This document shows, in pieces, positions 11,904 through 12,593 of a stretch of 64,000 nucleotides of DNA. Position numbers and translations under genes: made by a program. Positions within the stretch are counted from its first letter, which is position 1. Every line of letters starts with the position of its first letter. The stretch lies in the sequence record OP292654.1. The stretch is one strand, 5' to 3'. The notes below the pieces were generated by a model. It made no database searches. It was not told where the DNA came from and saw nothing but the letters and a program-made list of their open reading frames with translations.

Positions 11904-12593
11904 ATGAATAATATCAGGGAATACGTACTCTGTCGCGATGATATATTCTATTTTATGGTGAATTATCTCGATTTGGAGTTCAGAGGGTTCCAGTTTGATA
12001 TGATGACTAAGTTTTTAGACTTAGAAACTGGTAAAACTCAAAATATAGTTGGGCATAGAGGTTGTGGACTAACAACCGTAAGCTGTATATATGCTTTATG
12101 GAGAGCTTTGTTCTATCCAGGAAGTAGTATTGCTTTTAATTCACCTATGGAAATGATGGCAAGAGATATAAAGAACACATTTTATCTTTTGTATCAACAA
12201 GTAATTCAAAAATGGGATACATCGCAGACTAGATACTCAATAGATAAAAGTACTGACCGTTATATCAAGTTTGACAATAAATCATATGTACATTTCACTC
12301 GTTCTAAAGAACAAATGCGTGGAAATCATTTCGATACTATAATCTATGATAGTGCATATATGGGACCAGGAAGTACTGAAGTATTCAGACAAACGGCTCC
12401 TACCGGATACAACTATGTAATACTAAACACGTTTTTACCGCCTGAAGAACATGAATTAGAGAAAATAGGAACATTAACTACATATCCGTGGTACTGTAAT
12501 CCGAACCTAACTCAAAATTGGTATTTGACAATGCTAAATAGTCTTGGAAACGATGACTTCTTATTGAAGTACGGTTGTACAAGAGGAACTTAA
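11904..12593 (+). CDS. Terminase ATPase-domain paralog with degenerate Walker motifs
   Basis: Aligns by eye with the N-terminal half of the adjacent TerL: GHRGCGLTT vs [14 protein letters not shown] vs [18 protein letters not shown] vs [12 protein letters not shown]. Confidence 0.7.

Follow-up and report, generated by a model that had tools for sequence, protein, structure and literature searches.

In the textbook view, a terminase consists of two components, a small subunit (TerS) and a large subunit (TerL), and in the case of T4 the small terminase gp16 has been found in the literature to stimulate the ATPase of the large terminase gp17 more than 50-fold and to modulate the gp17 nuclease. 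For CBB as well as further Rak2-like phages, a 'truncated large terminase' has been recorded, an arrangement that the authors called unusual and that they also found in the Sinorhizobium phages phiM12 and phiN3 (Buttimer et al. 2017). Likewise, 'two large terminase homologs in tandem (ORF270 and ORF271)' have been described in the Xanthomonas phage XbC2, in which no small terminase was found (PMC11273794). As the papers on CBB and XbC2 both record the pair, the gene pair itself is not a discovery. These papers note only that the terminase domain of the shorter protein is incomplete, and no literature on the catalytic state or the function of these paralogs was found. New in this description are the pseudo-ATPase state, in which catalytic residues are lost, and the arginines that are kept, as well as the mode of selection, the repeated truncations and how far the family extends.

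Several genera of jumbo phages (among them Mimasvirus, Eneladusvirus and Asteriusvirus) carry the paralog, as do many T4-like phages known from metagenomes, and the names that such proteins now bear are 'terminase large subunit', 'terminase small subunit' or 'hypothetical'. With a conserved but dead copy of the motor ATPase, the two known components would be joined by a regulatory subunit of a new type, and the trans-arginine-finger model of motor coordination could be put to a natural test.

The terminase locus of XbC2

The window analysed here, a stretch of 64,000 nucleotides, comes from Xanthomonas phage XbC2 (OP292654.1), with which the region is 100% identical; the phage has a genome of 367.9 kb, belongs to the genus Mimasvirus and is one of the jumbo phages in the Rak2/GAP32/CBB group. 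The paralog, XbC2_270, is encoded on the plus strand at 11904..12593, as judged by its open reading frame, homology, fold and the annotation of the record, where it is called 'terminase DNA enzyme large subunit'; the protein has 229 residues and is predicted to be non-catalytic. Its reading frame is intact, with an ATG start and a TAA stop at 12591-12593, and a single spacer base (12594) separates this stop from the TerL ATG at 12595, as the first-pass annotation of the sequence had it. The Shine-Dalgarno sequence of TerL, AGAGGA (12582..12587, plus strand), seven nucleotides before the TerL ATG, lies in the last codons (T-R-G) of XbC2_270, and it is kept in relatives, even where the paralog is truncated.

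The adjacent TerL, XbC2_271 (12595..14244, plus strand; 549 aa), was rightly regarded as complete, as judged by Pfam, PHROG and the gp17 alignment. It matches Pfam Terminase_6N and can be aligned to T4 gp17 over residues 21-521, its Walker A and B motifs are intact, and it has residues aligned with D401, E458 and D542 of gp17, which we take to be, in role and numbering, the acidic residues of the nuclease.

Upstream of the paralog, a 166-aa protein of phrog_15898, here called p166, is encoded at 11360..11860 (plus strand; reading frame, profiles and AF2 model), its gene overlapping the stop codon of the FEN/RNase H gene (ATGA). p166 is strongly conserved, with a dN/dS of about 0.05 and 47 homologs, and its AF2 model is a beta-rich, two-domain structure with an invariant RSKKRFYPGWW motif for which no match among the solved folds in the PDB was found. 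As a candidate for the missing TerS it was rejected, given the beta-rich model, the lack of a fold match in the PDB and of any match to a TerS family. Between the p166 gene and the ribosome binding site of the paralog, folding and conservation reveal a hairpin of 9 bp with a T run after it (11868..11889, plus strand; AGTACTGCC/GGCAGTACT) with a folding energy of -15.2 kcal/mol and a z-score of -2.65. Conservation of the hairpin extends across genera, and paired changes are seen in Yen9-04. It might serve as a terminator or attenuator, or else as an element for mRNA stabilisation or processing that divides the replication genes from the terminase genes.

A terminase ATPase domain without catalytic residues

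That the 229-aa protein mirrors the ATPase domain of TerL was borne out by sequence and fold. In a BLASTP comparison, residues 10-225 of XbC2_270 align with residues 38-288 of the adjacent TerL at 21% identity (E 7e-9), and PHROG 5989, 'terminase large subunit', matches XbC2_270 with an E-value of 3e-53, while Pfam Terminase_6N scores 13 bits, which is under the cut-off. In the PDB, the profile of the paralog family finds the T4 gp17 ATPase domain (2o0h) with an E-value of 2.5e-12. The same structure is the best Foldseek match (E 8e-11, TMq 0.73) of the AF2 model of XbC2_270 (pLDDT 83.6, pTM 0.82), followed by the TerLs of P74-26, D6E, Sf6 and PhiV-1, and the model also resembles the PhiV-1 TerL chain that is bound to Avs3 (8dgc_E, TMq 0.60). 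XbC2_270 thus has the same fold as the gp17 ATPase domain (2o0h, 3cpe). Both have the adenine-binding Y/F-Q, the arginine and the glycine of the P-loop, an arginine before Walker B, the Walker B aspartate and the pre-hinge stretch, and the N-terminal CRDDIFYF of the paralog closely resembles CRDDIVYF of gp17. Unlike gp17, XbC2_270 has neither the Walker A lysine nor the catalytic glutamate, and it lacks the nuclease/translocation domain.

The losses can be read from the alignments, which pair GHRGCGLTT of the paralog with ARQMGKTT of TerL, and TIIYDS with LLYLDE. In the degenerate P-loop (residues 50-58; 12051..12077, plus strand; alignments and motif table), R52, G55 and T57/T58 are kept and the Walker A lysine is replaced by L56. 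Some terminases have a 'deviant' Walker A lysine further upstream (K-x-R-Q-x-G), and this was sought in the paralog family as well; the position is occupied by glycine or serine, in XbC2_270 by G50, and there is thus no substitute P-loop lysine. In the degenerate Walker B motif (residues 145-150; 12336..12353, plus strand; alignments), D149 is kept and the catalytic glutamate is replaced by S150. Both replacements, as well as the absence of a nuclease domain, had been noted at first pass and proved correct: XbC2_270 has its end (residue 229) at the EYxCEF-type motif, before the hinge. From its sequence, the protein is therefore predicted to adopt a complete gp17-type ATPase-domain fold that is incapable of ATP hydrolysis, and since the P-loop lysine has given way to a hydrophobic residue, normal ATP binding is probably lost, too.

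R139-G140 (12318..12323, plus strand), eleven residues before the lost glutamate, is nearly invariant in the paralog family, and family alignments with gp17 numbering place it at R245-G246 of T4 gp17, R245 being the counterpart of R139. At this position, between alpha2 and beta3, the literature locates the trans-acting arginine finger of P74-26 TerL, which is also numbered R139, and an arginine has been reported at the equivalent T4 position as well.

Residues 194-229 form a highly conserved C-terminal module, YPWYC...LNSLG...YGCTRG (12483..12590, plus strand), as seen from conservation, the model and the TerL and gp17 alignments. The module is nearly invariant in the close family and is modelled as two short helices with a pLDDT below 50. 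Its counterpart is TerL 265-288, which aligns to about residues 330-356 of gp17 in NsubII, next to the hinge. A helix-loop-helix that contacts the portal has been described in a review on T4, and the NsubII stretch that matches the module may well be this element. As the last three codons of the paralog (ACA AGA GGA) provide the TerL Shine-Dalgarno sequence, the conservation of the module is in part a matter of the RNA.

Orthologs in jumbo phages

In nine phage records, the gene order is FEN/RNase H, p166, paralog, TerL, structural protein, SSB and UvsX, and the paralog is found directly upstream of TerL in Mimasvirus, Eneladusvirus and Asteriusvirus as well as in XaC1 and Xoo-sp13. The 'truncated large terminases' of the Rak2-like phages (CBB_274, GAP32_268, BF_0272, 121Q gp3) are orthologs in this same syntenic slot. 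The two genes are separated by one nucleotide or overlap by 11-26 nucleotides, and the ribosome binding site of TerL lies inside the last codons of the paralog. Identity to the XbC2 paralog is 86% in Kaldavass, 49% in CBB and GAP32, 39-40% in BF and pEa_SNUABM_47, 23% in XaC1 and about 16% in the Asteriusvirus coliphages (121Q gp3, EcMJ_355), and even between lineages with no more than 66% identity in TerL, the reading frame has stayed intact. From a search of 5.8 billion proteins came another 16 homologs, which are metagenomic.

None of the 21 aligned paralogs has the Walker A lysine, in whose place L, I, M, V or S is found. The catalytic glutamate has given way, in the same alignment, to S, N, D or H, and E-D stands at the two Walker B positions of one divergent paralog. 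The XaC1 paralog likewise has neither the lysine nor the glutamate. What the aligned paralogs have kept are Q30 of the adenine motif, R52 and G55 of the P-loop with the following Ser/Thr-Thr, R139-G140 and D149. The sequence is most conserved in three parts, which are the helices at the N-terminus (residues 1-30), the region of the P-loop and the final ~35 residues, and it varies most in residues 80-160.

Two genes in the same slot deserve mention. Xoosp13_242 of Xanthomonas phage Xoo-sp13 (L039:2235-2927), directly upstream of TerL and annotated as 'terminase small subunit', is a member of the paralog family: it matches phrog_5989 at 4e-28, its P-loop reads AYRESGTSYA, the Walker A lysine and the glutamate are absent and the Arg-Gly pair is kept, and the label is likely an annotation by position only. 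ORF256 of XacN1 was considered as well and rejected, being homologous neither to the paralog family nor to Xoosp13_242.

Selection and recurrent loss of the C-terminal module

Rates were estimated by the method of Nei and Gojobori for the paralog and four neighbouring genes. Between CBB and GAP32, the paralogs share 57% of their amino acids and have a dN of 0.318, as compared with 93-96.5% and 0.021-0.039 for the neighbours, and between XbC2 and CBB the identity is 50% for the paralog and 96% for TerL. Five close genomes (XbC2, Kaldavass and three IMG/VR contigs), in which dS is unsaturated (0.47), give a dN/dS of 0.225 for the paralog and 0.038 for TerL, and the paralog has exactly 229 codons in all five. 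The dN of the paralog is 7-15 times that of TerL and three other neighbours. Diversifying selection was sought in 30-codon windows of the paralog in the five genomes, where the highest dN/dS was 0.48. The paralog is under purifying selection that is much weaker than that on TerL, and the windows give no sign of diversifying selection. The comparison across relatives that the first-pass annotation had proposed thus gave syntenic orthologs, catalytic residues lost in every aligned family member, and constraint on the protein.

The C-terminal ~50 residues of the paralog have been lost independently in three lineages, and the TerLs as well as the paralogs place the three truncated types in different sub-lineages. 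In the Yersinia phages fHe-Yen9-03/-04 (L003:3050-3250, L036), the paralog has 185 residues; compared with BF, YPWYC has been removed by a deletion of 30 nt, another of 1 nt comes with a stop codon, a third deletion spans 12 nt, and the spacer retains the remnants LNSLE and GYTRG. The contig L043 (2501-3100) encodes a paralog of 171 residues and has a remnant of similar kind, and on the low-coverage contig L042 (2501-3160), in-frame stops leave 177 residues and a recognisable ...LNSLGNTEFKKQFECTRGNSNGEF remnant. TerL of this low-coverage contig is also called as two reading frames (332 + 216 aa). Traces of the LNSLG and TRG motifs can thus still be recognised in the non-coding DNA behind the truncated frames. 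In all truncated paralogs, the N-terminal core of 171-185 codons is open and includes R52, G55, R139 and D149. As these three phage lineages are apparently viable, at least the C-terminal module is dispensable, and the full-length paralog is not indispensable, while the core seems to be retained. The first-pass description of an intact frame with no sign of decay therefore stands for the XbC2 copy, but not for the family, which evolves fast and has lost the C-terminus in three related lineages; of the disruption in close relatives that was named as speaking against a function, only this partial form was found, with the core open in each case.

A wider family of pseudo-ATPases

When 1.84 billion cluster representatives were searched with the profile, 2,928 matched, and the best 150 of these were aligned to it and classified together with close homologs. 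In this set, the proteins of at least 330 residues all have a P-loop lysine (50/50; 29 canonical, 20 'deviant', and one at neither position by a strict column test), and 49 of the 50 have the catalytic glutamate. Both residues are absent from 70 of the 112 proteins of less than 330 residues. As full-length TerLs keep the lysine and the glutamate, the losses are specific to the short proteins. About 48 clusters without the two residues, among the matches classified, are outside the Rak2-like group. Across the paralog family, R52 is kept in 100%, G55 in 98-100%, R/K139 in 86-100% and D149 in 83-91%, and the values for the 48 distant clusters are 100%, 98%, 86% and 83%, respectively. The distant clusters were selected for lacking the lysine and the glutamate, and it is thus the retained residues that are informative.

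Six of seven distant members that were checked are encoded in terminase operons, two of them beside a TerS-like gene. Three (P0073, P0084, P0108) are directly upstream of TerL, and one (P0096) is upstream of a gene whose product has at least 502 residues. The two with a TerS-like neighbour (P0089, on a 177-kb T4-like contig, and P0103) are found in the order gp14, gp15, pseudo-ATPase, a protein of 196-199 residues, and TerL, and the 196-199-aa proteins match phrog_735, 'terminase small subunit', with E-values of 6e-4 and 4e-5. For the seventh (P0080), no TerL was found nearby. The metagenomic T4-like loci L012:4001-6978 and L015:3738-5513 have the pseudo-ATPase (253-257 aa) after gp14 and gp15, and it is followed by the TerS-like protein (196-199 aa, phrog_735), TerL and gp18, a three-gene terminase cassette in T4-like phages. 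In a tblastn search of isolated phages with the TerS-like protein of contig L015, no match was found, and this protein is therefore no guide to a TerS in Rak2-like genomes.

A free tree of the ATPase domains is poorly resolved. When 45 pseudo-ATPases were constrained to one clade as opposed to 37 TerLs, the log-likelihood was 87 units above that of a quick free tree, and the AU test gave a p-value of 0.945 for the constrained clade; the pseudo-ATPases may therefore go back to a single ancient origin. Long-branch attraction could give such an outcome as well.

A stand-alone protein similar to a TerL ATPase domain is known from T4 itself. This protein, vs.8 (phrog_1488; L041:8257-8913, minus strand), has been found to be toxic together with EcAvs2 in a 2026 paper. 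Like XbC2_270, it is a short phage protein that is derived from or resembles a terminase ATPase domain, but unlike XbC2_270, it has kept Walker A and Walker B and is not encoded next to gene 17. As a relative of the paralog it was dismissed, as it has no detectable similarity to the profile of the XbC2 family. Since vs.8 belongs to a different family, stand-alone derivatives of terminase ATPases arose more than once in T4-like phages.

Possible functions of the paralog

With moderate confidence, XbC2_270 can be regarded as a TerL-derived pseudo-ATPase that serves TerL as an accessory or regulatory partner without catalysis of its own, a reading that draws on sequence and fold. A pseudo-ATPase regulator or a hetero-oligomeric motor subunit had already been proposed at first pass, and the proposal fits the fixed position in the operon, the coupling to TerL, the purifying selection and the retention of R139 without catalytic residues in cis; physical binding to TerL is the conjectural part of it. 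As the catalytic residues are gone and R139 is kept, the protein would have lost its own hydrolysis and kept the arginine by which TerL protomers fire their neighbours. XbC2_270 would be made together with TerL through the tight translational coupling and would dock on TerL via the interface that is used between TerL protomers in the motor ring, an interface that probably is retained along with the ATPase-domain fold. With R139 and the P-loop arginine both kept, the paralog could then complete or occupy a TerL active site in trans, and this may tune the ATPase or nuclease activity of TerL or its assembly, before or at the portal, in an activating or a restraining direction. A subunit of this kind is known from clamp loaders, where delta-prime is a non-catalytic ATPase subunit of a ring or arc that keeps an arginine presentable to its active neighbour. 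This is an analogy only, as delta-prime belongs to a different ATPase class and as its co-assembly is established, whereas that of XbC2_270 is presumed. What counts against a tight structural partnership is the fast evolution of the paralog beside an almost invariant TerL, which is unexpected for such a partner, and the repeated loss of its most conserved part, the C-terminal module.

More tentatively, the widespread pseudo-ATPases, possibly of single origin, might together constitute a third, hitherto overlooked terminase component of T4-superfamily and jumbo phages that co-assembles with TerL, donates the arginine finger in trans and shares the ATPase-activating job of TerS, and that may replace TerS in Rak2-like phages.

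It is rather unlikely, from what the sequences tell, that the paralog simply is the functional small terminase of the Rak2-like phages, which would be a TerL derivative that has displaced a gp16-type TerS and has taken over initiation, that is, recognition or holding of the DNA and activation of TerL. The first-pass annotation had pointed out that the paralog occupies the position of T4 gene 16. This is true by position, and no TerS has been recognised in XbC2, p166 as the other upstream gene has no TerS-like fold or family, and the Xoo-sp13 homolog even carries the name of a small subunit. TerS families diverge fast, and an evolution much faster than that of TerL would suit a small terminase. 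As with gp16-type TerS, the XbC2_270 gene is the immediate upstream neighbour of TerL, the two being translated together, and if the partner reading of XbC2_270 holds, the protein would also be a non-enzymatic regulator of TerL. There is, however, no sequence or fold similarity between the two: no match of XbC2_270 to TerS families was found in Pfam, PHROGs and NCBIfam, its fold is that of a TerL ATPase, and it has neither a helix-turn-helix nor an oligomerisation domain. Truncation in three lineages also speaks against a small terminase, and a divergent TerS may be encoded elsewhere in the 368-kb genome. Related pseudo-ATPases coexist with a separate TerS-like gene in the two T4-like contigs, and the paralog is thus not simply a TerS.

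Less probable still is a slowly decaying duplicate that has little or no function as a protein and is kept mainly as its translation delivers ribosomes to the TerL start. The dN/dS six times that of TerL and the elevated dN would agree with decay, as would the repeated loss of the C-terminal part by deletions and stop codons with retention of the TerL ribosome binding site, and fewer homologs were detected for the paralog than for p166 (16 versus 47). But a dN/dS of 0.22 reflects clear purifying selection, the frame has stayed intact across lineages with strongly diverged TerLs, very distant members still have conserved N-terminal helices as well as Q30, R52, G55, R139 and D149, and even the truncated copies hold their long open frame in AT-rich DNA.

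The weakest and a highly improbable explanation is the decoy that was suggested at first pass, an anti-defence decoy or inhibitor shielding TerL from the terminase sensors Avs1-3 and Upx: such sensors do recognise the TerL ATPase domain (2026 Avs2/Upx study), the model resembles the Avs3-bound TerL chain, and the fast evolution could reflect a conflict, but in the same study an isolated TerL ATPase domain or T4 vs.8 activates EcAvs2 and is toxic, EcAvs2 reads the terminase-bound ATP via a bridging ATP whereas the paralog probably cannot hold ATP and would then be neither bait for such a sensor nor a block to it, no 30-codon window has a dN/dS above 0.5, the gene, translated together with TerL, has its fixed place in the terminase operon and not among anti-defence genes, and the loss of the active site is better read as an evasion of sensors of immutable catalytic features than as bait.

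Inteins and frameshifts in related large terminases

The TerL profile phrog_36964 has 890 positions, and XbC2 TerL covers only 435-890 of these, with the break just after the P-loop. Hint and LAGLIDADG domains have been noted in TerL of Rak2 and K64-1 in the CBB paper, and the partial match fits intein-containing TerLs of relatives and a XbC2 TerL without intein.

A programmed frameshift that fuses the paralog to TerL was considered. Every intact locus has TerL in the +1 frame, but such a fusion was judged unlikely because there is no conserved slippery site and because the junctions vary between the 1-nt gap and the 11-26-nt overlaps.

A frameshift is found within TerL of a subgroup of Asteriusvirus coliphages, where one nucleotide (C) is inserted within the Walker A codons, which read ATG-C-GGA-AAA-ACA as compared with ATG-GGT-AAA-AC in 121Q and XbC2. 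The insertion sites (L004:4085-4100 and L038, of the Escherichia phages vB_Ec-M-J and Ecwhy_1) are homologous to 12855-12870 of the window. Due to this insertion, many independent isolates have their TerL annotated as two reading frames (113 + 445 aa). For a functional P-loop (RQMGKTT), a +1 frameshift would be required at the insertion, and the split of the Asteriusvirus TerL may represent a programmed recoding.
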